Of a DNA stretch of 64,000 nt, positions 1,744 to 63,642 are shown one piece after another. The notes under the pieces are model-generated. The model had not been told where the DNA came from, searched no databases, and was given only the letters and a program-made list of their open reading frames with translations. The DNA comes from Hemiscyllium ocellatum (taxonomy: Eukaryota): assembly GCF_020745735.1 (NCBI RefSeq), contig NC_083433.1, forward strand, positions 12,783,363 through 12,847,362, read 5' to 3'. Within the stretch, counting starts at the first letter, position 1. Each line of letters begins with the position of its first letter. A program made the translations under genes and the position numbers.

Positions 1744-4700
1744 CTAACTGCTGTCCTCCAGTGAGAGCCTGTCAAACAGGTACTCTCCCAGCCCATTCTC
1801 AGCAGCTCCCAGATGCTTCAGGTTGGTGATGTAGTCCCCAGGTTGTTTGATTATCTCAATCTCCTCATCCAAGTAGTGGGTCTCCAGGAAGTCACAGCTG
1901 GAACACAGGAATAGCACAACATTACATTAGCACAATCCAAGACAGTTTGGAGAATTCCAACTGCAAAATACACTGGGCAGTACTAGCTCTGGACAACCCC
2001 GAAACATCCAGCAAACAACTAGAAATGTTGTACTGGTGAATATATTAGCCTCTCAAATGGCAAGATATGCCATTTAAGTGGAGCTGAGTTGTATTGTGGT
2101 GTATGGTGATCATTCCACTGCAATGGTCCTGAATGGGGATTCAGTGGATAATATCACTTCAGCATTCCCACTAGATTACAATCCAAGTTCCTGCTTGACC
2201 TTATTGCTGAGCAGTTGTAACATGGATCATTCCAGATCCACACTGGGTGGTTACAATGTTATATCTGGACAAAGTTAAAAATCACAACAACAGGTTAGAG
2301 TAGACAAATTTATTCAGAAGCACTGCTCCTTCAGGTGGTTGTGGAGTATTAGTTTGGAAGCTAGAGCTTTGAATAAGCCTGTTGGACTAAAACCTGGTGT
2401 GGTGTTAGTTTTAACATTGTCCACCCCAGTTTGACACCGGCATCTCCAAATCACATCTCCCCAAATGTTGCATTATTGAATTTCAAACCCACAAAGACCA
2501 ACCAGTGAGGTGTTGCCCTGAGGGTGTGGCAGTGATGAGAATGAGGGGGTGGTGAAGCTTACATGAGGGTCAGTCTGGGCAGTGGCGAGTTGGTGTAGAT
2601 CCAGCAAACTGATTCACATTCTTCTCCAGAATCAGGGCAACCTGCATTGCCTGCAGAACGTTACCCCACTCATCCCTCTCTGGCTTCTGAAACATGGAAA
2701 CAAAAAGGGCAGTTAAGGATCAGAATCAGAATCCCGACAGTGGGATGAAGCAGGTCATTTTGCCCATTTGTCCACATCAACCCTCCAGAGGGTCCCAACT
2801 GACCCAACCCATCCCTGTAATCTTGTTTAGTGAAAAAGATATCCCTGGAAACCCATCCCTGTAATCCTGTTTATGGAAAAATGTAGGCTGTGTATCCCTG
2901 GAAACTGGGCAAACTAGCCTGACTAAACTGACCTGCACATCTGAGCTATGTGCAAACTGAGCAGTTCCCAGTGGCTGGAATTGGACCTGGGTCCCTGGCA
3001 CTGAGACAGTGCAGTGCCAGTACCATCCTCAAGTCCAGAAGATGGTTTGAGGAGGAAGGGTTTTAGTGGGATCTCAAGAAACTGGAGAAATATGGAATGC
3101 ACCACCTGAGGAATGTGGGGGAGGCTGTAGTCCAATGATATTGCAGCAACATCTGGACAAATACTTCAAATGCCAGGGTACAGTGGGCAAAGGACTAAGT
3201 GCAGGAGGATGGGATTAGTGTAGTTTGGTCAACATCGATATGGTAGTCCAAAGGGCCAGTTCCTATGCTGTGACTGGGAGATGGAAGAGATCATAAGGGA
3301 AAGTCCAGCAACAGCTCTTCACTGCCCCTTCAGGGTGAGCAAACCCTATTCCCAATGGCTTGAAGCCACATCACAAGAGCAGCCATTCCCCTCCCCAACA
3401 TTCCCACCTTCACATCCTGGTGGAGGACTGCCTCCACACTGATTCTGGAATTTCAGCAGCTTCTCTGCATGTTCCTGCTTCTCCTGGGACTGAGCTTTGA
3501 AGAACTGGGAGAAATGGTGCAGGGCAACATCATCCCGGTCAAAGTACGACATCTGAAAGAGAACCATTTCCATCCCATTAACACATCACTGGCCCCAATT
3601 CTAGTCGTCAGAAGTAGAGACTAATTTAGTCCTCAAATCAGACTGACTATTCAAGCAGTTATTAATCCTCTGCATTCTCAACCAGGGTTTAATATCCCAG
3701 TGTTGTCCAGTGAGCCAGCAGCTCTTAACCCCAGCTTCCTCCTGGGGACATGCAACATCCATGTTTTAATTTGGATTAAACAGCTGGAGAGTTGCTCAGC
3801 AGGTCTGGTACAGATCAGAGGAGAGAAACACTGAATTCATGTTTCTGAACATTAACACCATTAGAATTGGAAGATATTAGACATGAACTGAAACTCTTCA
3901 ATAAGGGAGGTATTTAGAGTGATAGGTACCAAATGGGACGAGATTAATGCAGGATATCTGGCTGGCAGGGAAGCGTTGCTTAGAGGGTCTGTTTCTGTGC
4001 AGACCAGGTCTAGGATGGTAGATTTCAAGTATTCTGCATGAAACCAACTGAAGTTGTAACCTTTAACAAGGTGAGGGTTCAGTTGGATGAACAAGGAAAA
4101 CCACTGGAGTACTAAGTGCAGTCTACTCCATTCAACATTAACCAGAGGGTAATACCCAGTCCCCAGGACATGGAGATACAAAACTGATATCAGAACACAG
4201 GGACAGGAGGCCATTCAGCCCCTCAAGCTTGTTCTGCCATTCAGTGAGAAAGTAACCATGAGGTTGCTGCAAGGCACTACATTGTTCCTTTGGGGCTGAC
4301 CTGGAAAAATGGATGTTGGACACTGCTGGCACTAATTTAGTCAGGAGAGAGTTTTGTGCAACTTGTACATCATTGGGATTGTTTGTACCATACATTTGAT
4401 CAGTACAAGTGTGTTCATATCAGAGGATGGATGGAAGGGAATGAGTGGAATGGGAATGAGAGAAAGGGGACCTGGTGTTTGCTGAGGAAAGCCTGTACAA
4501 GGAGCTTTTGAATTGTAAGCAAGCAACTGAGTGATTAGAAAAGTGTAACTCGATCAAGGAAGAGTCCGATACAGAGAAAACCTCAGGCAACTCAGATTAA
4601 CCATTACATCAAGCTGGTGACATCATCTGCAGGTAAATGGAAAAGCACTGTGCTTGGTTTGACTTGAGCAGTTTAAACCATTGATTTACCCCCATATTTG

Positions 4701-6495
4701 ACAAACATTGAACCATCATGCTCAGAAGTGAAATGTTAATGTTACTCCTCTAAGCAGGATGTTTCATCCTTGGTTTGTGTCCCCCTCAAGATGGGTCCTA
4801 AAGGCAGAGGTGCTGCCATGTCTGGGAATAGCTTCATCAAACAATGGCAGGGGAGTGGCTAGTTCAGTTATTCTCCAATCTTGGTTTGTGTTAACAGGCA
4901 GAAGCTGCTGGGAGCAGAGAAGCTGTTCCTCTGAAACTAAGTTCCATGCTTCAAACAGATGTTTCTTACTTAAACACTCTAAAACCTCTCCTGCCAGCAT
5001 GTGGAGTTTGTATTTATCATTTGCTAAAGGGGGTGTTTTTGGGCTGTTGTGGGTATGGGAACAGCTCCTTTGTTATGTTGCAATTGAGTCCATTGGGTTC
5101 AAAGTAGTTGGATTGTCTTAAAGTCTGTTTCCTTTGGTCGGTGCTTCTACCATAGAATGTAGATCGTTGTTTTTATAAACAAGAGAGTGATATGACCAGC
5201 TACATCTCCCCTGGATTATACACTGTACAACTGCCTTTATAACAAGGAAAGGTTAGGGTCTGGGCAACCTTAGTGGTTTTGACAGATCCAGACTGGGCCC
5301 CAACAGTTGGTGGAGGATTATGAAGGGGCACGACTCAGATCAGAGTGGAAGTGAGTGATCCATCCTTATTAAAAGCTAACTGGTTCACCAATGAAAGCTA
5401 TTCCCACTTCCATCAGACAGCTCGAGGGATTTCAGCCTCATCTCATGAGAGGGGACCTGTAAAACAGAGCAGCCCAGAGTGTGATGAATATTCACCACAT
5501 ATCTGGATGTGTGTACCTACAACATTCAAGCAGACACCATCCAGGATAAAACAGCCCACTCCATTGGTACTGCATTCTCCACCTCCCTTCAGTGTCCATT
5601 ATCTACCAGGTACCCTGCAGCACTCACGTAACACCTTCCAAATAGGACATTCTAACACTTCAGAAGGGTATGGACAAATCATTACTGGGAAAAAAGTGGG
5701 TCACTTTAGTTCTCATTCCATCCTGATTTGAAGGTCTCAATTGTTTCAGTCATAGAGTCAAATTTCAGACTACTCCAGCACATTGACTCTTCCTCCAGGT
5801 GAAGGGATGGACAACAAGTAGCTACCTGACCACCCACACATGAATAGTGAATGCAGAAAGCCAGATAGGCCTCAACTGGAGCCTATTTAAGTGCAGGCCA
5901 ATCACAGCCTGACATTAAATACCTCTGCTCAGATAAGCCAAGTATCATTGATAAACACTGCCATAACTCCCTTTTACAACATCAAAACTAGTATGATGCA
6001 TATTTAGCATTAGCAGAAAATAAACCAAATATACTAGAATACATTAAAGCAGCAGAAAGGCAAATGGTCAATGGATACCTCCATATGGTTGGCTTAAGTG
6101 GTTTCTAAGCTATTCCTTTAAATTATGCTGTTTTGACAACCCTAGGGAAATGACAGTTCCTGCCTATGACAGTCATATCAGGGAATTATACATTAACCAA
6201 GAACACTTCACCTTGCATGCATTATTGCACATCAGTATCATACCTCATTATTGCTAATAACATCACATTTATCTTCAATTGTGAAATAGGTAAGAGCTGC
6301 AAAAGTCAATCTACGGAAGCATCAAGTTAATTAGAAATAAGGAAAAGCTTACTTCGCATAATAGAAGCAATTATAAATAGAGACAACACTCACCAAAGAC
6401 TGATAGAGATAGGAGGCAGTGAGCTCCAGGTTAATCTGCTTGTTGAAAGTAGCTTCACAATCCTGGTGATAGTTTTGACAAATCTGGGAAGCCAT
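1744..6495 (-). pseudogene. Ferritin subunit pseudogene (array copy 1)
   Basis: Exons 6394-6495 (102 bp, [34 protein letters not shown]), 3408-3552 (145 vs 147 bp), 2563-2686 (124 vs 126 bp) and 1744-1897 (154 vs 156 bp), all with GT/AG boundaries. Exons 2, 3 and 4 each lack 2 bp. The exon 2 frameshift gives a TGA a few codons into exon 3. The TATA box is also altered (TATGAATAAAA vs TATAAATAAAA). Confidence 0.9.
2271..2452. mobile_element. Degenerate inverted Penelope-derived repeat in intron 3 (also about 38428-38642 and 54286-54503)
   Basis: AAAGTTAAAAATCAC...CAGGTT... at one end and its reverse complement plus ...ACACCGGCATCTCCAAATC at the other. Same family as 16564-16700. Absent from copies 2, 3, 4, 6 and 8. 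Confidence 0.6.
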
Positions 6496-6596
6496 TTTGT
6501 GACAAATATTGCACTACTTGCCCATTCAAGACAAATCACAAGCCAACCACAAACTTAGAATTACCACCAACTCTACCTAAATCATCACAGACTTTG

Positions 6597-6800
6597 GACT
6601 TTTATTCATACTTGAGGAACAATACTAATTTTATTAAGCAGGAAATGACATCATCAGTGATGGCCAATCACTCTTGTTAATCAATCAATCAGCTGCCATG
6701 TCCATTCAGCGCAGAATGGGAATTGGATCCAGAAGCCAATTAGAATTGACAACTGTTCGATGATGAAATTAGTGATTGACCTCTTACACAAGTGCAAATT
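6597..6800 (-). promoter_or_regulatory. Proximal promoter of copy 1 (degenerate TATA and DR1)
   Basis: Homologous to the promoter blocks of copies 2-7. CCAAT and TGACATCA are retained; TATA and DR1 are mutated. Confidence 0.55.
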
Positions 6801-7719
6801 CTCTAAGTATATCTACCTGAAAATGAGATTAAAATATACTCTGAAACTTCACTATTGTATTTGAGCTTGTGTATTAAGACATGCTGAAAACAGATTTACG
6901 AATTTTGTTAGTTTGTTACTCCGAGGGATTTGTCTTCCTACCTTTTGAATGACAGTGTTGGGAGTCCATTGAAAAATGGCTAGATTTTGTTGACGTTAAA
7001 TATTTGCCTATTGATTGACTGTGACAGAAATACAGTGCTTTTGGGTCATCCAGTGCAGGCAACTGATGTACTTTGTGGATCCATTCTGAATCTGCTGTGA
7101 TTTCTTTGACCTTAGGTCTCAGGAAGCCCAGTTTACAAACCAAAACACTAAATGTGCTGAGTGTGTCAGCCATGTAGTAGGTCTCAGGCCTCCATGTTTA
7201 TATTGTTGTTAGAAACGTACTGCATGATCAACTTTTCAACTCCATGTTCAGTTTTAATTGTTTCAAGATGAACTGGCCCTCAACTCAAGGATGTTTCCAA
7301 GTGGAGAGATTCTGGTTGTGTTTACATTGTATTCTGTCGAACGTACAGCTCAGAAACTGGCCTCCCAACTCGACGTGGTCCATACGCACATCTTTATGGA
7401 CATGAAAGTATCTCAACATAAAGTTGAATATGTTGAACTGAGCAGCCTCCAGTGGAATGGTGGGCGGTGAGAGTTTTGGGGATTGAAGGTCCCCATTCAA
7501 TGTTAGGGTATGAACACAGCTTTGACGGATGGATTGGTGGAAGCAAGTTACTTTGACCCAATAACTTTCTCAAATACCAGGTTACAGTCTAGCCATTACT
7601 TGTCAGATTGAGTTACAAGTTTGAATATTATACATGGAACCACGGTCAGAGGTCAACCCTGATAAATATTCATGGTGATGAGAGTAAGTCAGAGGCTGGG
7701 AATTCTGTTGTGAATTTCT

Positions 7720-7960: not shown

Positions 7961-8020
7961 ATTGGCACACTGAAGATTGAACAATAAAAACCACCCTGCA
8001 ATGGGGTGGGGGAGTGCAAT

Positions 8021-8300: not shown

Positions 8301-8327
8301 ATAATATACAACATGTTCCTTTAGGTT

Positions 8328-9010: not shown

Positions 9011-10167
9011 CAACACAACTCCCAACTTGGTCAGAAAATCACTGCTCCATCAACATCACAGAATCAAATCAAACTGCATCAGGAGAATCCTTCACCCCAT
9101 GGGAAGCTGGGACTGCAAACTGCTGACTTTAGCATCTAACCCTGAGCATTGCTGTGTTATTCCCAGGTCACTATCATCCTGCTCATTTCAGCTGTAGGTG
9201 GCAATGGAGTGTGTGTTGTTATCTAATACAGCTCAGGAGAATTTTATTTAGCTGACTCACTGCAATTGACTGACAGGAATGCTTGGTGAATTTCCCAGCT
9301 GTGGGCTGACAGGCTTGAGGTTAATCAAAGGGCAGGAGTATTGCTTGGAGTTCATCATTAGGGCTGTCACTGTGTCTCCCTCCCTATCTCCCCCACCCTG
9401 CTGCATGCATGGACTCCTTGAAGTAGAATGGTTCCCTAACAAGAGCTGTATGTTTGACCAGTTAATTCCTCCAGTTGTCTGACTCAATGTGCCCAACTGC
9501 CAGTTGGTGAGAAGACAAGGGGCAAAGAGCACAGGCCTGTGAGCTGTTCTAAACTCCAACTGGCTCCCTGTGCTGGGCCCACAGGGGAAGAAAACAGCAC
9601 CATTTAGAATGAACTAGTCATGTTAGAGCTCCAGTGGGAGCAGTGCTGAACAAGATGCGATTATATCATTTGGAGGTTAGCTGGTTCCTCCATCTGGGCA
9701 GATACCAGAGTACGATGGACCTCATCCAAAGGCCAGGGGGAAGGGAAGGAGCTAACCATTTGATGGACCAGTCTGGAAGTGAACATGGAATCAAAGATGT
9801 GGAATGTCTATGGAAAGTAATATCTGGACTGGATCTTTGAAGATGCATGGAAACTTCCTTTCACTAAGTCTGTTTGGGTATAATTGTACTCAAGTCCAGA
9901 AAAGAATTGTGTTGGACAAAAGGATTAGAGGTTTGACACCCCACAGACTGAAATCCACTAGTTGAAGTCAGTTTTTTGGGGTGGGGGGAAAGAGATGCAG
10001 GCAGGGAACCAGAGCAAAAAGCATTTAGTGAGGTGTTTTAGTCCAGTGATGTGATGGGCTAAAAATTGCATGATTACTGGCATCATCTCATGAGAGCCTG
10101 ATAAAGCAAATTCATATGAAGTATCAGTGGTCTGAACGATGGACAATAAGCATGATCAATACAAGAT

Positions 10168-10173
10168 TTTATT
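10168..10173 (-). terminator. Polyadenylation signal AATAAA of copy 2 (equivalents at 1607, 18933, 28155, 37764, 45450, 53627, 63351)
   Basis: AATAAA on the minus strand about 120-140 nt after the stop codon, at the end of a 3' UTR conserved in all eight copies. Confidence 0.8.
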
Positions 10174-10294
10174 CATTTCCATTCAGGTGGTACAGCCATT
10201 ACATTCTTGCCAACATGCTCCTTCTCTCTGGGTGGGGGAAGCCAGATTGTCCAAGTGAAGTCAGTAATGCATTCAGACAGTCCCCCATGCTCCA

Positions 10295-34276: not shown

Positions 34277-34470
34277 CTTTTATTTATACTTCAGGCGCAA
34301 GCCCTCATTTTATTCTGCAGGAAATGACATCATCAGTCATCATCAATCACTCTTGTTAATCTATCGATCAGCTGCCATGTCCAATCAGCACAGAATGGGA
34401 ATTGGATTCAGAAGCCAATCAGAATTGACAATGAGTCGATGATGGAATTGCGGATTGGCCTTTGACCTTT
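34277..34470 (-). promoter_or_regulatory. Proximal promoter of copy 4
   Basis: TATA, GGAAATGACATCA, E-box CAGCTG (34369-34374), CCAAT boxes, DR1-like 34456-34468. Confidence 0.65.
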
Positions 34471-37400: not shown

Positions 37401-37901
37401 ACCTTTTGAAAGAGGTATGAAAAACTTCCTTGCAGTTTACAAATTGTGCTCAGATCTAGATGAGTGTAATTCTTGGACAAGAGAATTATTAAAAAGGTTT
37501 TAAACTCCAGACTGCAACTCCCAACCTCATTCTAGGACAGGATAGCTTGAATTTATAGCCATTACAATTCCATTTAGTTATTCCTGTCCAATGGGGTGCA
37601 GGGCAAAAGAGAAGAGACATCTAGTGAGGGGTTTTAGTCCACGGATGTGATGAGCCAAATTGCAGAATGATTACTGGCTTCAAGCTCACCAGAGATCACA
37701 AACAAAATCAAGTGAAGGATCAGTGATCTGAATGATGGACAATAAGCAAGATCAATAGAAGATTTTATTCATTTCCATTTCAGGTGGTACAGCCATTACA
37801 TTCTTGCCAACATGCTCCTTCTCCCTGGGTGGGGGAAGCCAGATTGTCCAAGTGAAGTCAGTAATGCATTCAGACAAAAGCCAACAGTCCCCCAGGCCCC
37901 A

Positions 37902-41710
<3,809 letters not shown>

Positions 41711-41776
41711 TTTGTGATGAATACTATACTACTTACCTACCCAAGCCAACTACCTAAATCATCACTCTCTTTGGAC

Positions 41777-41965
41777 TTTTATTTATACTCCAGGAACAGA
41801 CCCTCATTATATTAAGCAGGAAGTGACATCATCAGTGATGGCCAATCACTCTTGCTAATCAATCAGCTGTCATGTCCAATCAGCGCAGAATGGGAATTTG
41901 ATCCCGAAGACAACCAGAATTCACAACTGGTTAATGATGGAATTGCTGATTGACCTTTGACCTCT
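41777..41965 (-). promoter_or_regulatory. Proximal promoter of copy 5
   Basis: TATA 41777-41787, GGAAGTGACATCA near 41819-41831, CCAAT at 41842 and 41876, E-box 41864-41869, perfect DR1 TGACCTTTGACCT at 41951-41963. Confidence 0.7.
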
Positions 41966-43578
41966 GACACAAGTTCAAATTCTCTAAGTGTATCTACCTG
42001 AAAATGAGAATAAAACATGCTCTGAAACTTCGCCATTGTATCTGAGGTTGTGTATTAAGACATACAGATTTGCAGAATTCTGTTAGTTTGTTACTCTGAG
42101 GAATTTGTCTCCCTACCTTTTGAATGACAGTGTTGGGAGTCCATTGAAAAATGGCTAGATTTTATTGAAATTACGTATTTGCATATTGATTGACAGTAAC
42201 AGAAATAAAGTGCTGTTGGATCATCTAGTGCAGGCAACTGATGAACTTTGTGGATCCATTCTGAATCTGCTGTGATCTCCTTGACCTTAGGTCTCAGGAA
42301 GCCCAGTATGAAAATAAAAACATTAACTGTGCTGAGAGATTGAATAGAGTGCCATGCGGTAGGCCTCAGGCCTTCATTTCTAAATTGCTGTTAGAAACTT
42401 ATTGCATGATCAACTTTTCTATCGTTACATTCAGTCTTTAATTATTTCAAGAACAGCTAACCCTCAACTCAAGCAGTTTCCAAGTGGGGAGATTCTGGTT
42501 CTGTTTACATTGCATTCTGTAAAATGTGCAGCTCAGAAACTGGCCTCCCAACTCAACATGGTCCATAGCCACAGCGATATGGACATGAGGGTCTCTCAAC
42601 ATAAAGTTGAATGTGTTGAACTGAGCAGCCTCCAGTGGAATGGTGGGCTGTGAGAGTTTGGGGATTGAAGGTCCCCACTCAATGTTAGGGTATGATCACA
42701 GCCTTGACGGATGGATTGGTGGAAGCAAGTTACTTTGACCCAATAACATTCTCAAATACCAGGTTGCAATCTAGCTCTATCTTGTCGGATTGAGTTACAA
42801 GTTTGAATATTATACATGGAACCACGGTCAGAGGTCAACCCTGATAAATATTCAAGGTGTTGAGAGTAAGTCAGAGGCTGGGAATTCTGTTGTGAATTTC
42901 TCAACTCCTGACTTTCTAAAGCCTCTCCACCATCTACAAGACCAAAGTTAGGAAAAGTGGTGGGATACTTTCCAATTTTTTGTCTGAATGCAGCCCCAAG
43001 AACACTGACGGAGCCCCAGGGAAATCTCTCACCATCCTGAGTTGGAACAATATTACCGTTTCTGAATCCAAGTCTCGGACGCCCCCCTTCAGCAGCAGCA
43101 GCAGCAGCATCTGGTCTCTCCCACACCAGGTGGGCTGTAATAACCAGCTCATCACCACCTCCTGAAGGGTAACTGCGGCTGGGCACGAAACGGAGCCTTC
43201 TGATTGGCACACTGACGATTGACCAATAAAAACCACCCTGTGACGGGGTAGGCTGTCCAACACTAGAGGGGCATAGGCTTAAGGTGAGCGGGGAAAGATT
43301 AAAAATAGGGACATGAGGGGCAACATTTTCAGAGAGAGGGTGCTGCTTATGTGGAAGGAGCTGCCGGAGGAAGTTGTGGAGGCGGGTACAATTATAACAT
43401 TTAAAAGACATTTGGACAGATACATGAATAGGAAAGTTTTAGAGGGATGTTGGCCATATACAGGCAAGTGGGTCTCGTTCAGTTGTGGAAATCTGGTCGG
43501 CATGGACAGGTTGGGCCAAAGGGTTTGCTTCTGTGATGCATGACTCTAATGGTGTGCAACAGCGTGTTTCTTTAGGGA

Positions 43579-43870
43579 GGCACGGTGGCTCAGTGGTTAG
43601 CACTGCTGCCTCACAGAGCCAGGGACCTGGGTTTAATTCCAGCCTCGGGTGACTATCTGTGTGGAGTTTGCATGTTCTCCCTGTGGCCGTGTGGGTTTCC
43701 TCTGAGTGCTCCAGTTTCCTCCCACAGTCCAAAGATGTGCAGGATTGGTGGATTGGCTATGGGAAATGCAGGGTTAAGGGGATTGGGTGGGTCTCCACAG
43801 GATGCTGTTCAGACCATTGGTGCAGACTCAATGGGCTGAATGGTCTCTTCCTGCTCTTTAGGGAGTCTGT
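43579..43870 (+). mobile_element. HE1/V-SINE-like element upstream of copy 5
   Basis: Best-preserved copy: GGCACGGTGGCTCAGTGGTTAGCACTGCTGCCTCACAG...CCTCCCACAGTCCAAAGATGTGCAGG. Confidence 0.85.
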
Positions 43871-45586
43871 CGGCATGACTGGATTGATTAAATTAAAAGG
43901 ATGTATGTAGTGGAATAAATATATCGACGGCCTTAAACACCCACCTCCTCTTTGAAGGCTGCAGTGTGTAATAGCTACAAAAATCACTGAAACAATTGCC
44001 AGGCTGTCTCCGACAGCCCCCTCCTTAACCCATAACCCCTGAAACCTTGAAAGATAAAGGAAACAGCTATACTGGTGTTAGCATCTCCAGGTTCCCTCTC
44101 CCAGTCACACCATGGTTTACACAGCAGTGTGACACCTGCTGGTTCAATTCCCATCACTGATTCAAGGTTACTATGAAGGAATCTCCTCAACCTCTTCCCT
44201 CACGTCAGGTCTGATGGCCCTCAGATTTAATCACCATCAGTTGCTTCTCGGTCTAATGAGAGCACAGCCCCAATGGTCTGGTAAGACAATGGCACCACAA
44301 CTCCCAACTTGGGCAGAAATCACTGCTCCTTCAACATCACTGGGTCAAGTCAAACTGCATCAGGAGAATCCTTCAGCCCATAGGAAGCTTTGATCAGCTT
44401 GGACTGCAAACATTAGCAGCAAGAATAAATCAAGATGGCAGCAACTAACCTTGACCTGTTGCTGTGTTATTCCCAGGGCATTGCCATCCTGCTCATTTCA
44501 GCTGTAGGTGGCAATGGAGAGTGTGTGCATTGTAATCTAATACAGCTCAGGAGAATTTGTTTGGCTGACAAGAATGCTTGGGGTCAATTTCCCCAGCTCT
44601 GGGCTGGCAGGCTTGAAGTTTATCCAAGTAGAGGAGTGGTACGAGCAGTGAGTCTGTATATAGGGAGGGACAGTAAATGGAGGGAAGCTATAGTGGGACT
44701 ATATTGCTACTTCTGTAATGGAGTTCTTCCCTGTGTGGAAGGGTTCCTTGATTCAACACCCATTCTAGCTCAACAGCAGTATGTTTGGCCAGTTTATCCT
44801 CCACTGCGTCAGACAATATGTTCACCTGCTCACAGCAGAGAGAAGGGGTGGTGATCACAGCTCCATAGGCTGGAGCTACAGGAAGAAAACAGCACCCTTT
44901 AGTATGGACTAGTCATGTCAGATTTCTAGTGGGAGCTGTACTAGACAAGTTGAGATCATATCATTCCCAGATTAGCCGGTTCCTCCAACTGGGCAAAACC
45001 AAGAGCCTGATGGACCTCACTCAAGGCCTATGGGAAGAGGTGAACACCTGGTGGGCAAATCTGGAAGTGATTGAGGAATCAAAAGCTGTGGAATGTCTAG
45101 ATTTGATCTTTAGATATTTCCTTTCACAAAGTTTGGTTGGGTACACCAGACTGCAATCCCCCATCCTAGTTTTGGACTGGGTTGGGGGGTGGGTGGTGCG
45201 GCTGGGAAGTGGGGGCAAGGTAGCTCAAAATTTGTCATCACTACACAACTTCATCTTGTAATCTTTGTTCAATTGGCTAGGGGTTGGTGGGTGAGGAAAG
45301 ATTAATAAAAATTTTACTCCAGTGGAGGTGAGGAGCCAAAAAAATTATAGAATGATTACTAGCATCAAGCCCTCCAGAGATAGTGAACAAATTAGAACAA
45401 AGGATCAGCGATCCTAATGATAGACAGTAAGGTCAAATCAATAGAAGATTTTATTCATTTCCATTCAGGTGGTACAGCCATTACATTCTTGCCAACATAC
45501 TCCTTCTCCCTGGGTGGGGGAAGCCAGATTGTCCAAGTGAAGTCAGTAATGCATTCAGACAAAAGCAGACAGTCCCCCATGCCCCA

Positions 45587-50039
<4,453 letters not shown>

Positions 50040-50141
50040 TTTGTAATGAATGTTGTGTTACCTCACTCCCTAAAACAATTCACAGCCCAACCACAAATTC
50101 AGCTTTAGCACCAACTATACCAAAACCATCACAACCGTTGG

Positions 50142-50340
50142 ACTTTTATTTATACTTCAGGCGCAAGCCCTCATTTTATTCTGCAGGAAATGACATCATC
50201 AGTCATCATCAATCACTCTTGTTAATCTATCGATCAGCTGCCATGTCCAATCAGCACAGAATGGGAATTGGATTCAGAAGCCAATCAGAATTGACAATGA
50301 GTCGATGATGGAATTGCGGATTGGCCTTTGACCTTTTGCA
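50142..50340 (-). promoter_or_regulatory. Proximal promoter of copy 6
   Basis: Essentially the same sequence as the copy 4 promoter. Confidence 0.65.
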
Positions 50341-53300
50341 CAAGTGCAAATTCTGTAAGTGTATCTACCTGAAAATGAGAATAAAACATACTCTAAAACT
50401 TTGCTAATGCGTCTGAGGTTGTGTATTAAGAAATGCTCAACACAGATTTGCAGAATTCCGTTAGTTTGTTACTCTGAGGGATTTGTCCTCCTACCTTTTG
50501 AATGACAGTGTTGGGAGTCCATCAAAAAATATCCATTGACATTAAACATTTGCCTATTGATTGATAGTGGCAGAGATAAAGTGCTTTTGGATCATCTAGT
50601 GCAGGCAACTGATGTACTTTGTGGATCCTTTCTGAATCTGCTGTGATCTCTTTGAACTTAGGTCTCAGGAAGCCCAGTTTAAAACCAAAACACTAAATGT
50701 GCTGAGTGTGTCAGCCATGTAGTAGGCCTCAGGCCTCCATGTTTAAATTGTTGTTAGAAACATATTGCATGTTCGACTTTTCTATCTCCATCTTTAGTTT
50801 TTAATTGTTTCAAGATGAACTGGCCCTCAACTCAAGGATGTTTCCAAAAGTGGGAAAGTTTGGTTCTGTTTACATTGCATTCTGTAGAACGTACAGCTCA
50901 GAAACTGGCCTCCCAGCTCAACATGGTCCATACCCACAGCGATATGGACATGAGGGTCTCTCAACCTAAAGTTGAATGTGTTGAACTGAGCAGCCTCCAG
51001 TGGAATGGTGGGCTGTGAGAGGTTGCAATCTAGCCCAATCTTGTCGAAATGAGTAACAAGTTTGAATATTATACACATAACCACGGTCAGAGGTCAACCC
51101 TGATAAACATTCACGGCGATGAGAGTAAGTCAGAGGCTGGGAATTCTGTTGTGAATTTCTCAACTCCTGACTTTCCAAAGCCTCTCCACCATCTACAAGA
51201 CCAAAGTTAGGAAACGTGATGGGATACTTTCCAATCTTCTGTCTGAATACAGCCCCAAGAACACTGACGGAGCCCCAGGGAAATCTCTCACCATACTGAG
51301 TTGGAACAATATCACTGTTTCTGAATCCAAGTCCCGGACGCCCCCCCTCAGCAGCAGCAGCAGCAGCAGCATCTGGTCACTCCCACACCAGGTGGGCTGT
51401 AATAACCAGCTCATCACCACCTCCTGAAGGGCAACTGCGGCTGGGCACGAAACGGAGCCTTCTGATTGGCACACTGACGATAGACCGAATAAAAATCACC
51501 CTGTGACGGGGTGAGGGGGTGTCCAACACTAGAGGGGCATAGGCTTAAGGTGAGAGGGGAAAGATTAAAAATAGGGATGTGAGGGGCAACATTTTCAGAG
51601 AGAGTGTGCTGCGTTCATGGAACGAGCTGCCAGAGGAAGTGCTGGAGGTGGGTACAATTACATTTGTCGAGCATTTGAAGGGAAGGCTTTGAGAGGGATG
51701 GGGCCAAATGCAAGGAAGTAGAACTAGTTCAGTTTTGAAAACCCTGTCAGCATGGATAGATTGGGACAAAGGGTCTGCTCCTGTGATGTATGACTCTAAT
51801 ACGTATACAACAGCATGTTCCTTTAGGGTGGCACAGTGGTTAGCACTGCTGCCTCATAGCACCAGGGACCGGAGTTTGATTCCAGCCTTGGGTAAGTGTC
51901 TGTGTGAAGTTTGCATGTTCACCCCATGTTTGTGTGGGTTTCCTGAGTGCTCTAGTTTCCTCCCACAGACCAACGGTACAGGTTTGGTGAATTAGCCATG
52001 GGAAATGTAGGTTTATGGGAAAATGATATGGGTCTGAGGATCATGCTGTTCAACTCAAATAGCCTCTTCCCACACTGTATGGAGTCTGTTAGCATGACTT
52101 AAGATTGACTACAATGAAAGGATTTATGTGGTGGCTTGAATTCGTTAAATGCCTTAAAGCCACCCCCCACCTACACTGAAGGTTGCAGTATGCACTAGCT
52201 ACAAAATTCACTGAAACAATCACCAGGATGTCGCTAACAGCCCCCTCCCTAACCTCCGATCCCTGAAACCTTGAAAGATAAATGAAACAGCTGTAGAGGA
52301 GAGTCAGCATCTCCAGGTTTCCTTTCAGAAGGACAGCACTCCCCACCTTGGAGAGAAATCGCTGCTCTTTCAACATCACTGGGTCAAATCAAACTGCATC
52401 AGGAGAATTCTTCAGCACATGGGAAGCTGGGAGGAAGCTCGGATCAGCTTGGACTGCAAACTTTAGCAGCAAGAGTAAATCAGATGGAAGCATCTAACCT
52501 CAAGCATTGCTGTTATTCCCAGATCACAGTCATCCTGCCCATTTCAGCTGTAGATAGCAATGAGAACATTTGTATTAATCCAATGCAGCTCAAGAGAATT
52601 CCTTGTGCCGACTCTCTGGAATGTGTCTGCCGGGACTGTTTGCAGTGAATTTTCCCAACTTTGGGCCGGCAGGCTTGAAGTTTATTGAAAGGCTGGGAGT
52701 GCATCCTCTGCTAGGGAGGGAAGGACAATGGAACATCACTGCTATTTTTGGGAAAGAAACCCCAGTGCAGATCAACTCCTGGCTGAGAGAGTGGGTATTT
52801 AGTCAAGGTTCCCAGCAGGAGAGAGAAAAAAAAAAGTGAACTGGTCAGTGTGCCCAGCTGCTAGTGGCTTTAAACAAGGCAAGGGGTGAAAAAGCACAGG
52901 CCCCTGTGCTGGTCCTGTTTTGACCTCCAACTGGCTCCTGAGGCCAGAGGAGAGGGAAAGAAAATGGCACTGTTTAGAATATCCTGGTTACATTAGAGAC
53001 CCAATGGGAAGCTAGACCAGGCAAGTTGAGGTCATATCATTCCCAGGTTATTGGGTTCCTCAGTCTGGGTAGAGACTAGAGCCTGATGGACCTCAATCAA
53101 GGCTAACAGCAAGATGCTAACAGATCCAGTCATCCAGATCATGGAGTTTGACTCCAAATTGTTGAGTACTGCTGAAGAGAATAAAGACATTGATGTTGAG
53201 GTGAACATTTGATAGGCAAATCTGGAAGAGAACATGGAATCAAAGATGGGGATGTCTTGAACTGACCTTTGAAAGGAAAGGAATGAAAACTTCCTCGCAG

Positions 53301-53764
53301 TTTACAATTGTGCTCAGATCTAGATGAGTGTAATTCTTGGACAAGAGAGTTATTAGAAGGTTTTAAACTCCAGACTGCAACTCCCAACCTCATTCTAGGA
53401 CAGGATAGCTTGAATTTATAGCCATTACAATTCCATTTAGTTATTCCTGTCCAATGGGGTGCAGGGCAAAAGAGAAGAGACATCTAGTGAGGGGTTTTAG
53501 TCCACTGATGTGATGAGCCATATTGCAGAATGAATACTGGCATCAAGCTCACCAGAGATCACAAACAAATTCAAGTGAAGGATCAGTGATCTGAATGATG
53601 GACAGTAAGCAAGATCAATACAAGGTTTTATTCATTTCCATTTCAGGTGGTACAGCCATTACATTCTTGCCAACATGCTCCTTCTCCCTGGGTGGGGGAA
53701 GCCAGATTGTCCAAGTGAAGTCAGTAATGCATTCAGACAAAAGCAGACAGTCCCCCATGCTCCA

Positions 53765-57575
<3,811 letters not shown>

Positions 57576-57640
57576 TTTGTGATGAATACTATACTGCTTA
57601 CCTACCCAAGCCAACCACCTAAATCATCACTCTCTTTGGA

Positions 57641-57830
57641 CTTTTATTTATACTCCAGGAACAGACCCTCATTATATTAAGCAGGAAGTGACATCATCAG
57701 TGACGGCCAATCACTCTTGCTAATCAATCAGCTGTCATGTCCAATCAGCGCAGAATGGGAATTGGATCCAGAAGACAATCAGAATTCACAACTGGTTAAT
57801 GATGGAATTGCTGATTGACCTTTGACCTCT
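57641..57830 (-). promoter_or_regulatory. Proximal promoter of copy 7
   Basis: TATA, GGAAGTGACATCA, CCAAT boxes, perfect DR1 at 57816-57828. Confidence 0.7.
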
Positions 57831-58954
57831 GACACAAGTTCAAATTCTCTAAGGGTATCTACCTGAAAATGAGAATAAAACATGCTCTGAAACTACGCAA
57901 TTGTATCCGAGGTTGTGTATTAAGACATACAGATTTGTAGAATTCTGTTAGTTTGTTACTCTGAGGAATTTGTCTTCCTACCTTTTGAATGACAGTGTTG
58001 GGAGTCCATTGAAAAATGGCTAGATTTTATTGAAATTACGTATTTGCATATTGATTGACAGTAACAGAAATAAAGTGCTGTTGGATCATCTAGTGCAGGC
58101 AACTGATATACTTTGTGGATCCATTCTGAATCTGCTGTGATCTCTTTGACCTTAGGTCTCAGGAAGTCCAGTATGAAAATAAAAACACTAAATGTGCTGA
58201 CAGATTGAATAGAGTGCCATGCGGTAGGCCTCAGGCCTTCATTTCTAAATTGCTGTTAGAAACTTATTGCATGATCAACTTTTCTATCGTTACATTCAGT
58301 CTTTAATTGTTTCAAGAACAGCTAACCCTCAACTCAAGCAGTTTCCAAGTGGGGAGATTCTGGTTCTGTTTACATTGCATTCTGTAAAATGTGCAGCTCA
58401 GAAACTGGCCTCCCAGCTCAACATGGTCCATAGCCACAGCGATATGGACATGAGGGTCTCTCAACCTAATGTTGAATGTGTTGAACTGAGCAGCCTCCAG
58501 TGGAATGGTGGGCTGTGAGAGTTTGGGGATTGAAGGTCCCCACTCAATGTTAGGGTATGATCACAGCCTTGACGGATGGATTGGTGGAAGCAAGTTACTT
58601 TGACCCAATAACTTTCTCAAATACCAGGTTACCATCTAGCCTTATCGTTTCGGATTGAGTTACAAGTTTGAATATTATACATGGAACCACGGTCAGAGGT
58701 CAACCCTGATAAATATTCATGGTGATGAGAGTAAGTCAGAGGCTGGGAATTCTGTTGTGCATTTCTCAACTCCTGACTTTCCAAAGCCTCTCCACCATCT
58801 ACAAGACCAAAGTTAGGAAAAGTGTTGGGATACATTCCAATTTTCTGGCTGAATACAGCCCCAAGAACACTGACGGAGTCCTTGGGAAATCTCTCACCAT
58901 CCTGAGTTGGAACAATATCACTGTTTCTGAATCCAAGTCCCGGACGCCCCCCCT

Positions 58955-58990
<36 letters not shown>
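58955..58990. repeat. (CAG)12 microsatellite; paralogous (CAG)6-7 at 7907, 35483, 43090, 51349
   Basis: Counted directly. Confidence 0.95.
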
Positions 58991-58993
<3 letters not shown>

Positions 58994-59450
58994 CTGGTCT
59001 CTCCCACACCAGGTGGGCTGTAATAACCAGCTCATCACCACCTCCTGAAGGGTAACTGCGGCTGGGCACGAAACGCAGCGTTCTGATTGGCACACTGAAG
59101 ATTGACCAACAAAAACACCCTGTGACGGGGTGGGGGTGTGCAACACTAGAGGGCTTAAGGTGAGAGGGGAAAGATTAAAAATAGGGATGTGAGGGGCAAC
59201 CTTTCCAGCGATAGTGTGCTTTCTACATGGAATGAGCTGCCAGTGTTGGAGGCGGGTACAATTACAACATTTAAAAGATGTTTGGACAGATACGTGAATG
59301 GGAAGGTTTTAGATGGATGTCGAGCATATGAAGGCAAGTGGGACTCATTTAATTTTGGAAATCTGGTTGGCATGGACAGGTTGGACTGAAGGGTTTGTTT
59401 CTGTGATGGATGACTCTATGACTCTAATGTTGTGCAACATGTTCCTTCAG

Positions 59451-62400
59451 GGTGGCGTGGTAGCTCAGTGGTTAGCACTGCTGCCTCACAGCTCCAGGGA
59501 CCTGGGTTTGATTCTAGCCTCGAGCACAAAGCTGTTGACCCCAGGAAACATTGAGGAGCTCAAGAGGGACTGCGCAGGTTGGAGAACCATGAAGCCTCTC
59601 TTTGAGTCCCCAGCGGATTGGTGAGAAACAGTAAAAGGGAACATCAAGAGGTTCTTCATCCTCAAAGGTGTTCAGGAGGTGAGAGAGAGGTGGGGAAAAC
59701 TGTCCCAGCTCCAGGAAAGTATGCAGAACTTGTTCCTGCTGCAGACGATGGGGGTCGATGTCACGGAGGACCTCCAGGAGGTGAAGGGCCAGCAAGCCTC
59801 CCTCATTGCCTTGGAGGCCACCAAGATAATCTTCTGGCCAAGTGTCCGCTCGGTGGAGCAGGACGAGACGTGCTCACATTTCTTCTTCCAGAAGGTGCAC
59901 AAAGCGAGTTCCGTGCTCAGCAGCCTGAAGGAAGAAGATGGCTCGATAACGTCATCTCAGGCTGACATCATGAGGATCAGCAAATCCTTCTATGTCAGTC
60001 TGTATGATGCGAAGCCAAACAATAGCGCGGCCTCCCAGTTATTCCTGTCCTCTATCATGGAGGTCTCAGATGACAGAACACGCGAGAGGCTGGACCAGCC
60101 GCTATCTCTGGACGAGCTGACCAAGGCCCTCGAGTCCTTCCAAAAGAATAAAGCTCCAAGAAGCGAAGGCTTACAGGTTGAGCTCTATTCTGCTCTGTGG
60201 GACTTGATTGGCCAGGACCTGCTGGAGATGTATGTCAGTATGCTTCGGGCAGGTACCATGAGTGAATCCGTGAGGAAAGGCATCATCCCCCTCATCTACA
60301 AGCGGAAGGGGGAGAGGGAGGAACTCAAACATTGGAGACCAATCACACTGTTGAATGCGGATTACAAAATTTTATCAAAGGTAATCGCCAACCGGGTCAG
60401 GTCTGCTCTGGGGTCGGTGGTTCACCCTGACCAAACCTGTGCTATGCCGGGCAGGAAGATCGCTGAGAGTCTCGCACTCCTCAGGGATACGATCGCCTAC
60501 GTGCAGGATAGAGGGTTGGACACCTGCCTGATCAGCCTGGACCAGGAGAAAGCCTTTGACAGGATATCACACAGGTATATGAGAGATGTTCTCTCCAAAA
60601 TGGGCTTTGGGGAAGAAATCTGCAATTGGATCAGACTGCTCTACACCAACATTGTCAGTACAGTCTCAATCAATGGGTGGGAATCAGATAGCTTCCCAGT
60701 CAGATCTGGAGTCAGGCAGGGCTGCTCTCTCTCTCCTGCCTTGTTTGTGTGCTGCATAGAGCCATTTGCCGAGTCCATCAGGAAAGATGCGAGCCTGAGA
60801 GGGGTGACTATTCCTGGCAGCGGGGGCCTGCAGGTTAAGGCCCCCCCTGTACATGGATGACATCGCTGTTTTCTGCTCGGATCCACTGTCTGTGCGCAGA
60901 CTCATGTGCATATATGACCAGTTCGAACAGGCCTCGGGGGCCAAGGTAAACCGAGGCAAGAGCGAGGCCATGCTCTTCGGGAACGGGGCCGACCAATCCT
61001 CGATCCCCTTCACTGTCAGGACCGACCACCTGAAGGTGCTGGGTATTTGGTTCAGAGGGGGTGGGGCGGGCACCAAGTCTTGGGGGGAGTGTGAAGCAGA
61101 AACTGGGCAGATGGAAGCTACGGTCACTCTCCATCGTGGGAAAAACCTGGTCATCAGGTGTGAGGCACTGTCATTGCTGTTATATGTGACACAGGTGTGG
61201 CTTATTCCCAGAACCTGTGCCGCTGCCGTCACTCAGACCATCTTCCAATTTATATGGAGATCAAAGATGGACCGGATCCGAAGGGACTCGCTATACAAAG
61301 ATCTGGGCAATGGGGGAAAAAATACACCCAATGCCACCCTCACCCTGATGGCCACCTTTGTGTGTGGCTGCATCAAACTGTGTGTGGATCCCCGGTACGC
61401 AAACACCAAGCGTCACTACATACTGAGGTTCTACCTGTCCCCGGTGTTGCGAATGATGGGCCTGGCCTCACTGCTGCGGAGCGCTCCGAGTAGTTGGAGC
61501 GTTCCGTATCACCTGTCCTTCGTGGAAAAGTTTATGAAGAAAAATACCTTTGACCACAAGTCCATGAGGAAGTGGTCAGCACGTAGTGTCCTTGAGACCC
61601 CTTCGGGAAAAGGAGAGGGCGGATCCTATCGAGCAGTTCCCTGAGCAGACTGTCAAAGCCATTTGGCAGAATGCCTCATCGCCAGAACTTTCCAACAAGC
61701 ACCGAGACATGGCTTGGCTGGTGGTGAGAAGGGCTCTGCCTGAGATCTTTAATGCACGCCCGGACTCTCAGCCGCACTGCACGCTGCCCTCGAAGTGGCT
61801 GCGGGGGGGGGGAATGACTGTCACACACCTCCTTCTGGAATGTGCCTCTGCAGAGGCAGGCAGTGGTGTTTGTCGAGGTTCGTCCCGAGCAGTGCCGTGA
61901 CATGGGACTCCATGCTCTGTTCCCCAGGACAAATATCAACTGTGCCTGGAGGATCATCAACTCAGTGAAGGATGCTCTCTGGGTGGTCCGAAACCTGTTG
62001 ATCTTCTAGCTGAAGGAGTTGACCCCGACTGAGTGTTGCAGACTGGCACATTCCAAGGTCCAGGACTACGTGTTGAGGGATACGCTGAAGCTTGGGGCAG
62101 CTGCTGCCAAGGTGCAGTGGGTAAGAGACCCCTGTGTAACATCTGCCTGCCTAAGAAGAACAGGGGGCCCACGCCATCATTTGGGCTCTGCTGACGCCTC
62201 AGCTAAATATATGGGCATATGATTTATATATAGGTCTGTACATTTATCAATGATAAATTCTGATCGATGTAAAGAAATGGAATGTTTACATATGTATGGC
62301 ATGACCAACTATGTAGACCAAAATATTGTGATTAAAGTATATTTTTGAAATAAAAACACTCTAGCCTCAGCTGACTGAGTGTGGAGTTTGTATGTTCTCC

Positions 62401-62525
62401 ATGTCTGTGGGCTTCCTCCCATAGGCCAAAGATGTGCAGAATCAGTGGATTGGCCATGGGAAATGTAGGGTTAAGGGGATTGAGTGTTCAGACTCAATGG
62501 GCTGAATGGTCTTTTCTTGCCCTGT
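59451..62525 (+). mobile_element. HE1-like SINE upstream of copy 7, split by the Tx1 insertion
   Basis: 5' part 59451-59521 and 3' part 62360-62525 join to give the paralogue of 43579-43870. Confidence 0.8.
59522..62359 (+). mobile_element. 5'-truncated, frameshifted Tx1/L1-clade non-LTR retrotransposon (ORF2 RT)
   Basis: Motifs WRPITLLNADYKILSK, DQEKAFDRISH, GVRQGCSLSP and YMDD (frameshift near 60850), plus a degenerate C-terminal zinc knuckle (TVTHLLLEC) and an A-rich 3' end. 9-bp TSD TCTAGCCTC at 59513-59521 and 62360-62368. Interrupts a SINE. Confidence 0.92.
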
Positions 62526-63488
62526 GCATCTATAATTATAGGGAGGAACAGTAAAGTGAGGGAGCCATAGCAAGACTATATTGTTACTTCAGGAATGAAG
62601 TCTTCCTGTGGCTAGGCTCCTTGATTAGATACCCATTCTGCTCAAAGGCCCCCATCAAGAGCTTTGTTTGAGTTGTTTATCCTCAATTTGTCTGACACTG
62701 GCCAACTACTTACAGCAGTGACAAGACAAGGGGCAAAGAGCACAGGCCCCTGTGCTGGTCCAAACCAAACCAGCACTGGCTGAGGCTAGAGCCACAGGAA
62801 GAAAACAGCAACATTAGAATGAATGAGTTAGTCACTTCAGAGTTCCCATTAGAGCTGTACTGGACAAGTTGAGATCATATTCTCAGGTTAGCTAGTTCCA
62901 ACTGGGCAGAACTAGGGGCCTGATGGACCTCATTGAAAGGCCTGTGGGAAAGAGGTGAACACCTAGTGGTCAAATCTGGAAGTGAACATTGGACATCCCA
63001 CATATTTGATTCAGACAGTCTTTTGAAGAGCTATGGAAACTGTCACAATTTGCTACAACTGTACCCATTAAGTTCAGAAAAGTATAATTGCTGGACAAAA
63101 GAATTAAAGGTTTGATATCCCACAGACTGCAATTCCAACCCAAAGTCTAGTTTTGGGTTGGAGTGGGGGGGCAGGGTAGCTTGAATTTGTCACTATGTAG
63201 AACTCCACCTAATTATCTTTGTCCAATTGGCTGGGGATGTGGGTGAGGAAAAGAAATTAGTAAATTTTAGTCCAGTGATGTGATGAGCTGGACTGCAGAA
63301 TGATTACTAGCATCAAGCTTTGTGTGAAGTATGTTGTCTGAATGACAGATTTTATTCATTTCCATTCAGGTGGTACAGCCATTACATTCTTGCCAACATG
63401 CTCCTTCTCCCTGGGAGGGGGAAGCCAGATTGTCCAAGTGAAGTCAGTAATGCATTCAGACAAAGAGCAGACAGTCCCCCATGCCCCA

Positions 63489-63642
63489 CTAACTGCTGTC
63501 CTCCAGTGAGAGCCTGTCAAACAGGTACTCTCCCAGCCCATTCTCAGGAGCTCCCAGACGCTTCAGGTTGGTGATGTAGTCCCCATGTCGCTTGATGATC
63601 TCAACCTCCTCATCCAAATAGTGGGTCTCCAGGAAGTCTCAG
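63489..63642 (-). pseudogene. Last exon of ferritin array copy 8 (rest lies beyond the window; probably a pseudogene)
   Basis: Exon 4 homologue is 154 bp rather than 156 bp (2-bp loss at its 5' end). The acceptor reads CAT instead of CAG (63643-63645). The 3' UTR and AATAAA (63351-63356) are present. Confidence 0.8.

Follow-up and report, generated by a model that had tools for sequence, protein, structure and literature searches.

A tandem array of intron-containing ferritin genes with an altered ferroxidase centre in the epaulette shark Hemiscyllium ocellatum

Organization of the ferritin array

The window, that is, the whole 64-kb stretch of Hemiscyllium ocellatum DNA analysed here (GCA_020745735.1), lies in a chromosome record of 50,073,909 bp (50 Mb), and its gene content consists of ferritin genes only. 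Eight ferritin units were found, all on the minus strand and arranged head-to-tail with a repeat period of 7.7-9.7 kb, six of them being intact (Table 1). Comparison of the four exon peptides with the window by tblastn gave eight matches to exon 4 and seven to each of exons 1-3. The E-values of these matches (1e-15 to 1e-49), together with the match of exons 2-4 to the Pfam Ferritin family (PF00210), mean that chance similarity is no concern.

Copies 2-7 each have an open coding sequence of 531 nt, encoding 176 amino acids in four coding exons, and are interrupted by three phase 0 introns with GT/AG at every splice junction, at positions that we take to be the same as in FTH1 and FTL. The products of three of the six intact copies are identical to RefSeq proteins of H. 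ocellatum, with the caveat that such models may come from homology-driven prediction: copy 3 (P0280, XP_060705148.1, the called gene span being 5232 bp in both), copy 5 (P0275, XP_060705519.1) and copy 6 (P0324, XP_060705620.1). Chiloscyllium punctatum has four genes for a protein identical to that of copy 6, and C. plagiosum encodes this protein as well.

The two remaining units are decayed. Copy 1 has lost 2 bp independently in each of exons 2, 3 and 4 (near 3429, 2610 and 1896), with two in-frame stops as the result; in its promoter, TATA has mutated to TATGAA and one of the CCAAT boxes is missing through deletion. In copy 8, the splice acceptor is changed from AG to AT and exon 4 has a 2-bp deletion, which falls in the same short TG run as the exon 4 deletion of copy 1.

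The original prediction of at least eight copies, six of them intact, is borne out by the tblastn exon counts and by the exact exon and splice maps. The array had also been described as open at both ends, and indeed copy 8 continues beyond base 64000, whereas the left edge consists of upstream-like DNA. The resemblance claimed between bases 1-700 and the upstream DNA of copies 4 and 6 was located at 206-673; its counterparts precede the ATGs of these two copies by 2.2-2.7 kb, so that the left edge has the appearance of DNA upstream of one more copy. The host, predicted to be a cartilaginous fish, was identified as such by the RefSeq identities of copies 3, 5 and 6.

Table 1. Positions of ferritin units and associated features in the 64-kb window.
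Feature	Position	Strand	Details
Copy 1, pseudogene	1744-6495	-	Exons 6394-6495, 3408-3552, 2563-2686, 1744-1897
Copy 2, intact, 176 aa	10295-15165	-	Exons 15064-15165, 11757-11903, 10913-11038, 10295-10450; GT-AG, open ORF
Copy 3, intact	19071-24302	-	Exons 24201-24302, 20489-20635, 19689-19814, 19071-19226
Copy 4, intact, H65Q	28292-34173	-	Exons 34072-34173, 29733-29879, 28908-29033, 28292-28447
Copy 5, intact	37902-41710	-	Exons 41609-41710, 39519-39665, 38749-38874, 37902-38057
Copy 6, intact	45587-50039	-	Exons 49938-50039, 47052-47198, 46204-46329, 45587-45742
Copy 7, intact	53765-57575	-	Exons 57474-57575, 55367-55513, 54607-54732, 53765-53920
Copy 8, exon 4 only within the window	63489-63642	-	Remainder past base 64000
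Promoter of copy 6 (example)	50040-50389	-	Conserved block of ~330 nt, present upstream of every copy
TATA motifs, copies 2-7	15258-15273, 24395-24410, 34274-34289, 41773-41788, 50140-50155, 57638-57653	-	From alignment
Poly(A) signal AATAAA, copy 6	45449-45454	-	From 3' UTR alignment
AATAAA, remaining copies	1606-1611, 10167-10172, 18932-18937, 28154-28159, 37763-37768, 53626-53631, 63350-63355	-	From alignment
Two-gene block, copies 4 and 5	28028-43647		Re-duplicated as 45312-59522 (copies 6 and 7), 16 kb
Left-edge stretch	206-673		87-88% identical to 36371-36837 and 52237-52696
Retroelement fragment, copy 4 intron 1	31752-32669	-	306-aa ORF; weak Pfam GIY-YIG match
Reverse-transcriptase ORF, spacer between copies 7 and 8	59679-60857	+	Pfam RVT_1, E = 1e-26

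Promoters, untranslated regions and search for iron-responsive elements

Alignment of the upstream regions revealed a TATA motif that is invariant in copies 2-7, accompanied by 2-6 CCAAT/ATTGG motifs per copy within 360 nt upstream, vs. 1.1 expected in this length. Between TATA and ATG lies a leader of variable length (63-101 nt), the least conserved portion of the upstream region. At the other end, the 3' UTR (~140 nt) is nearly invariant as far as AATAAA, conservation dropping sharply just beyond.

Ferritin is known as a low-copy gene under iron-dependent translational control through the iron-responsive element (IRE), which FTL mRNAs carry. In the whole window, on both strands, no Rfam match to the IRE was obtained at the gathering score or at E<=10, and no IRE hairpin (C-bulge/CAGUGN with 5 pairs) was found on the sense strand. 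A single IRE-like hit with four of the five pairs, at 15517, is absent from the other copies.

Encoded proteins

The full-length protein aligned without gaps to frog M ferritin over residues 1-176 (E = 1e-84), and the product of copies 2-7 is, as judged from its sequence, a cytosolic, H/M-like ferritin subunit devoid of signal or transit peptide. None of these copies has the complete H/M di-iron centre (E27, Y34, E61, E62, H65, E107, Q141). At these positions (27, 34, 61, 62, 65, 107 and 141), copies 2, 3, 5, 6 and 7 read E-Y-E-K-H-E-E and copy 4 reads E-Y-E-K-Q-E-E. The change E62K (human H numbering), common to copies 2-7, entails the loss of the bridging ferroxidase glutamate, and Q141E is present in carpet-shark members, including these copies. 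Positions 57 and 60 are occupied by A and Q, and the three-fold channel residues are kept. The K62 protein may thus be a catalytically poor, L-like structural subunit, a reading based on one or two residues; residual ferroxidase activity is possible, with E27, Y34, E61, H65 and E107 retained. The suggestion that the array produces a specialised subunit fits both the E62K change at the ferroxidase centre and the lack of IRE in the window.

The closest solved structure is that of bullfrog M ferritin (PDB 1MFR and variants), which has ~70% identity by eye, the same length and the same exon-encoded helices. However, its centre is complete, with E58 and Q137 (frog numbering) where K and E occur in the shark protein.

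Duplication history and divergence

Birth and death of copies, part of the original prediction, is visible in the two decayed copies with a common lesion, in the duplication of a 16-kb block and in the chimeric make-up of copy 3, whose 5' half is like copy 2 and whose 3' half is like copies 4 and 6. Within the duplicated block, 28028-31489 is 94.7% identical to 45312-48806, and 32944-43647 is 96.0% identical to 48803-59522 over 10.8 kb. In copy 4, a retroelement fragment enlarges intron 1, which measures 4192 nt vs. 2739 nt for the paralogous intron of copy 6, where the fragment is absent. The GIY-YIG match of this fragment is sub-threshold (21.9 bits vs. a cut-off of 22.6); GIY-YIG domains occur in Penelope-type elements. 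The region at 59.5-62.4 kb had no counterpart in the other ferritin spacers of the window.

Introns differ by 4-30% between units (p-distance up to 0.32). The two most similar units are 4-5% apart over 10.8 kb, and the introns of the other units are 15-30% divergent. Units are also distinguished by specific indels, including different retroelement insertions. In contrast with intron divergences of 20-30%, synonymous divergence between copies is low (dS 0.018-0.055), with a 3' UTR divergence of 0.014-0.05 and dN/dS of 0.18-0.46.

Phylogeny and distribution of the K62 lineage

Sequences with K62 were found in five shark orders (Orectolobiformes, Carcharhiniformes, Lamniformes, Heterodontiformes and Hexanchiformes) and form one clade in the maximum-likelihood (ML) tree (support 100/99). 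Its sister is the group formed by canonical elasmobranch ferritins and one from Callorhinchus (100/86), tetrapod L chains being placed elsewhere (100/100). Nevertheless, when a clade of K62 and L sequences was imposed, the constraint was not rejected by the AU test (lnL difference 1.14, p = 0.44). The ferritin tree that had been proposed as a check on the array thus sets K62 apart from tetrapod L chains in its ML topology, but leaves their union unrejected. Early-branching K62 members (Heptranchias, Heterodontus, lamniforms and carcharhiniforms) retain Q141, indicating that E141 is a late change, and a separate origin of E62K was detected within the canonical clade, in Heptranchias P0207.

Other distinct K62-lineage proteins of H. 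ocellatum are encoded on the same chromosome. In C. punctatum, each of the four genes identical to copy 6 is flanked on both sides by same-strand ferritin genes (176 aa, once 147 aa), with gene starts ~8-11 kb apart, and same-strand ferritin genes also flank the copy-6-identical gene of C. plagiosum in an independent assembly. Clusters at 90% identity contain 19-180 member sequences in several sharks, and the lineage, with large families, was also found in whale, basking, white, zebra, cat and sevengill sharks.

Discussion

Whether such an array had been described was left open in the original prediction. The phenomenon has been reported for Greenland and white sharks in a 2024 preprint, and the genes studied here already exist as RefSeq models. 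The Greenland shark genome is reported to contain 155 FTL and 179 FTH1 copies, grouped into three clusters that are syntenic with white shark and show ovary-specific expression (bioRxiv 10.1101/2024.09.09.611499). The H. ocellatum array is another instance of these ferritin mega-clusters, with which it shares tandem arrangement, introns, many full-length copies, antiquity and occurrence in distant sharks. Two sequence types, FTL-like and FTH1-like, are distinguished in the preprint. The E62K lineage, the absent IRE, the promoter and the exon-restricted homogenization go unmentioned in the preprint's single paragraph on ferritin. The copies labelled FTL there probably correspond to the K62 lineage, a link on which the preprint itself is silent; its claim that 90% or more of the amino acids are shared with the human orthologues is at odds with the ~65% identity between shark K62 relatives and a turtle L chain.

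We consider it probable (roughly 0.7) that the window is a slice of a large, ancient ferritin array yielding an L-like bulk subunit by gene dosage. The 64 kb would represent a portion of a much larger epaulette shark array that grows and decays by unequal crossing-over, with copies 4 and 5 giving rise to 6 and 7 by segmental duplication and copy 3 arising as a chimeric unit. The 2-bp loss in the same TG run of copies 1 and 8 suggests that a dead unit itself may have been copied, recurrent slippage in the run being also possible. Near-identical mRNA-coding parts amid drifting introns would be the outcome of gene conversion over short tracts combined with purifying selection, although low dS could partly be due to selection on the mRNA instead of gene conversion. 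Each intact unit would be a self-contained gene, with a TATA/CCAAT promoter, an IRE-less leader, four exons and a 3' UTR ending at AATAAA, its output presumably scaling with the number of genes and the activity of their promoters instead of being set by IRP/IRE translational control. The product may co-assemble with ferroxidase-active subunits from the canonical ferritin arrays of this chromosome. By analogy with the Greenland shark preprint, from which the tissue is taken, the purpose would most likely be bulk ferritin in ovary or oocyte.

K62 is the hallmark replacement of L chains. As in tetrapod FTL, it replaces the bridging glutamate of the shark protein, E141 of the carpet-shark copies is also shared with L chains, and a role as structural partner of catalytic subunits is expected. 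These features would be explained if an L chain already present in the jawed-vertebrate ancestor had later been amplified in sharks, and the 71-75% identity of exon 4 to reptile and amphibian L chains, the outcome of the AU test and the FTL label given in the preprint to part of the shark copies point the same way. Such orthology is nonetheless unlikely in our view: the ML topology joins K62 to the canonical elasmobranch clade, the E141 resemblance is of late origin, and E62K arose separately in Heptranchias P0207. Moreover, the shark proteins keep E27 and H65, which are replaced in L chains, and lack the L-specific nucleation glutamates at 57 and 60; unlike FTL, their genes have no IRE and occur in many intron-containing copies rather than one. 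Somewhat less than even odds are given to a shark-born lineage, not orthologous to FTL, that became L-like independently through loss of the ferroxidase bridge, left IRP/IRE control and supplies, from very many TATA/CCAAT-driven genes, the bulk structural partner of an oocyte iron depot.

Other explanations fare worse. An array made up mostly of neutral by-products of segmental duplication, silent or redundant copies heading to decay, could account for the two dead units with their common lesion and for introns and spacers strewn with retroelement fragments, but this is improbable given six units with open frames, all splice sites, invariant TATA and poly(A) signal, the dN/dS values, the identity of one protein in three species and the retention of the lineage in five shark orders. 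An adaptation confined to the epaulette shark, a hypoxia-tolerant species in which the ferritins would buffer iron as an antioxidant defence at re-oxygenation, finds some backing in the capacity of ferritin to limit iron-driven oxidative damage and in the hadal snailfish, in which a tandem expansion of fthl27 to 14 copies has been linked to ROS tolerance. In both cases a ferritin gene with introns was duplicated in tandem and a benefit through dosage has been proposed; however, the snailfish expansion is much smaller, recent, lineage-specific and H-like, whereas the shark arrays are old, far exceed it in size and comprise a ferroxidase-defective lineage, and the occurrence of this lineage in sharks of quite different lifestyles makes an epaulette-specific adaptation very improbable. 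Assemblies are error-prone at tandem repeats, and many copies might in principle be haplotype duplications or mis-expanded repeats. Intron divergence and unit-specific retroelement insertions make collapse or haplotype artefacts unlikely, and the same-strand arrays in the independent Chiloscyllium assemblies further reduce this explanation to the least credible of all.

Sharks thus possess very many intron-containing ferritin copies, which in this slice are IRE-less and have a catalytic site predicted to be disabled. If expressed, they would constitute a natural experiment in which gene-number dosage replaces translational control. The array also bears on how many times the split between catalytic and structural ferritin subunits evolved and, if the shark-born origin of K62 is true, it would represent a second, convergent H/L division of labour in vertebrates.

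Structure of the ferritin gene array

A tblastn comparison of the window with peptides from the four exons of one copy gave eight matches to exon 4 and seven to each of exons 1-3, every one on the minus strand and with a period of 7.7-9.7 kb, in agreement with the original prediction of eight head-to-tail minus-strand ferritin copies. Exact exon ends were set by anchored pattern matching. As had also been proposed, six copies (copies 2-7, counted from left to right) are intact: their joined exons form a 531-nt reading frame (176 codons plus stop) interrupted by three phase-0 introns, with GT/AG at all junctions, and exons 2-4 match the Pfam Ferritin family. In copy 1, three short deletions create stops, and both the TATA box and one CCAAT box of the promoter are damaged. 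Copy 8 crosses the right edge, and the acceptor of its exon 4 is AT, not AG. Both copy 1 and copy 8 have lost 2 bp from one and the same short TG run in exon 4, which may mean that an already dead unit was duplicated, with recurrent slippage as a possible alternative. At the left edge, the similarity described earlier to DNA upstream of copies 4 and 6 was recovered at bases 206-673 (87-88% identity to DNA 2.2-2.7 kb upstream of both), so that the earlier description was correct on all points tested. No tandem repeats within the window were reported by Tandem Repeats Finder, because the array period exceeds the limit of the program.

Retroelement debris was found in two places. The ORF in intron 1 of copy 4 scored 21.9 bits against Pfam GIY-YIG (cut-off 22.6), a domain carried by Penelope-type elements; this ORF explains both the strong GC skew seen at 30-34 kb and why the intron is longer than that of copy 6. 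The reverse-transcriptase ORF lies in the GC-rich spacer that separates copy 7 from copy 8; it is followed by a second ORF of 263 aa that had no Pfam match, and neither has a counterpart in the other spacers.

Features of the ferritin array with their window coordinates
Feature	Position	Strand	Remarks
Copy 1	1744-6495	-	2-bp deletion in each of exons 2, 3 and 4
Copy 3	19071-24302	-	Chimera of copy-2-like and copy-4/6-like parts
Retroelement fragment, copy 4 intron 1	31752-32669	-	306-aa ORF; weak, sub-threshold GIY-YIG match
Reverse-transcriptase ORF and second ORF, copies 7-8 spacer	59679-61644	+	RVT_1, E = 1e-26
Copy 8	63489-63642	-	Exon 4 alone within the window

Authenticity of the copies and counterparts in other carpet sharks

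The window's ferritin genes are already RefSeq models. The proteins of copies 3, 5 and 6 are identical at every residue to H. ocellatum XP_060705148.1, XP_060705519.1 and XP_060705620.1, respectively, and the gene of copy 3 is placed on a 50,073,909-bp record of GCA_020745735.1, with a matching span of 5232 bp, and is flanked on either side by 176-aa ferritin genes. The two most similar blocks, 28028-43647 (copies 4 and 5) and 45312-59522 (copies 6 and 7), show 94.7-96.0% identity; introns of the remaining unit pairs are 15-30% divergent, and each unit has insertions of its own. This divergence is too large for haplotype duplication or assembly stutter, and the array is judged to be real.

At least five further distinct H. 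ocellatum proteins with lysine at position 62 (K62; human H numbering is used throughout) are encoded on the same chromosome outside the window. Chiloscyllium punctatum has four genes, and C. plagiosum one, for the copy-6 protein; each of the four C. punctatum genes is bordered on both sides by ferritin genes of the same strand, with starts ~8-11 kb away. Several shark RefSeq ferritin models (P0341-P0345 and P0350 in our protein set) are 240-290 aa long and score as expected for more than one ferritin unit; they are probably fused exons of adjacent array members, an annotation hazard in such arrays.

Probable exchange and conversion among copies

The promoter, exon 1 and intron 1 of copy 3 resemble copy 2 (90-95% identity), whereas introns 2-3 and the 3' flank are similar to those of copies 4 and 6 (91%; intron p-distance 0.04-0.09, or 0.04-0.08 for copy 4 alone, against 0.22-0.29 between introns 2-3 of copies 3 and 2). 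Judged from these alignments, the mosaic bears the footprint of unequal exchange. Among the intact copies, every pair shows low synonymous divergence (0.018-0.055) and a 1.4-5% difference in the first 150 nt of the 3' UTR, whereas intron differences in these pairs reach 30%. Together with dN/dS values of 0.18-0.46, this contrast suggests exon-confined gene conversion combined with purifying selection. Conversion mediated by cDNA was considered for the exon-only homogenisation and set aside, since the 5' leader is part of the mRNA and yet is the least conserved segment.

Promoter, leader and 3' UTR

A conserved block of ~330 nt is present directly upstream of every ATG, with a TATA motif that is invariant in copies 2-7 and, in the 360 nt upstream, 2-6 CCAAT/ATTGG boxes versus 1.1 expected. 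The TATA motif lies 63-101 nt from the ATG, so the 5' UTR is necessarily short. The 3' UTR is nearly invariant as far as AATAAA, and alignment is lost shortly beyond. Comparison with a C. punctatum contig, one-third of which is N, gave no promoter match.

The ferritin copies in the window lack an iron-responsive element (IRE). An Rfam scan of the window gave no IRE match at the gathering score, nor did either strand give one at E<=10, and a direct sense-strand search of the window for the C-bulge/CAGUGN hairpin found only one imperfect site, upstream of copy 2 and missing from the other copies.

Predicted properties of the protein

Among solved structures, bullfrog M ferritin is the closest, and the protein aligns with it over 176 residues without gaps. 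The N-terminus begins straight at helix A, leaving no leader peptide. Five of the seven ferroxidase residues are retained (E27, Y34, E61, H65 and E107), and two are replaced, E62 by lysine and Q141 by glutamate. E62 bridges both irons of the ferroxidase centre, and established work on H and L chains places K62 of L chains in the metal site, which points to a catalytically poor, structural subunit. At positions 57 and 60, the additional nucleation sites of L chains, the protein has A and Q. Copy 4 alone has lost a second ferroxidase ligand through H65Q (exon 2, 29733-29879); reptile L chains have the same residue at this position. The most variable position across the intact copies is residue 19 (41654-41656 and paralogous codons), occupied by K in copies 2, 3, 4 and 6, by M in copy 5 and by A in copy 7.

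Relatives and origin of the K62 lineage

Exon 4 alone, searched against a representative library, retrieved only unnamed 50%-level representatives; named shark proteins were reached with a stop-free 118-aa stretch containing this exon as query. K62 was found with E141 in zebra, whale, bamboo and epaulette sharks, and with Q141 in basking, white, smooth-hound, cat and horn sharks. In P0165, the only sevengill protein of the K62 clade that was examined, position 65 is additionally occupied by R. Clusters at 90% identity contain 19-180 member sequences in several sharks, consistent with the family being very large. Rays and chimaeras contributed no member of the clade to the best 120 matches, which is weak negative evidence.

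A first quick tree including long-branch library representatives was poorly resolved. The ferritin tree suggested alongside the original prediction was built by maximum likelihood from 76 sequences, after removal of these representatives and addition of lamprey, chimaera, coelacanth, ray-finned fish and bird references. The K62 lineage forms a single clade (support 100/99) whose internal branching broadly agrees with shark relationships, sister to the canonical elasmobranch ferritins plus one chimaera ferritin (100/86), and tetrapod L chains form a separate clade (100/100). A grouping of K62 and L chains as one clade was not rejected by the AU test (p = 0.44). Orthology of the K62 genes to FTL nevertheless seems unlikely, and convergence with L chains is favoured because E141 is restricted to carpet sharks, E27 and H65 are retained, and E62K arose again in the canonical clade: the Heptranchias perlo (sevengill) protein P0207, which is K62/Q141, was placed inside that clade. 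Thus, this predicted ferroxidase-disabling change is a recurrent one in shark ferritin arrays.

Relation to known ferritin expansions

No paper dealing with ferritin of the epaulette shark emerged from full-text literature searches. Whether such a cluster had been described was a question left by the original prediction, and the phenomenon is already reported for other sharks. A preprint on the Greenland shark genome reports 155 FTL and 179 FTH1 copies, of which ~80% fall into three clusters whose synteny is shared by the white shark; the expansion is dated to 250 million years ago or earlier, and expression of the largest cluster is reported as ovary-specific (bioRxiv 10.1101/2024.09.09.611499). 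Among teleosts, the hadal snailfish offers a parallel in its fthl27 expansion (14 copies). The earlier interpretation, an amplified, birth-and-death ferritin cluster possibly serving bulk production of a specialised subunit, is sound. The character of the K62 lineage appears to be absent from print, as does its likely independence from tetrapod FTL. The predicted subunit is an unusual one, encoded without an IRE and with its ferroxidase bridge broken.
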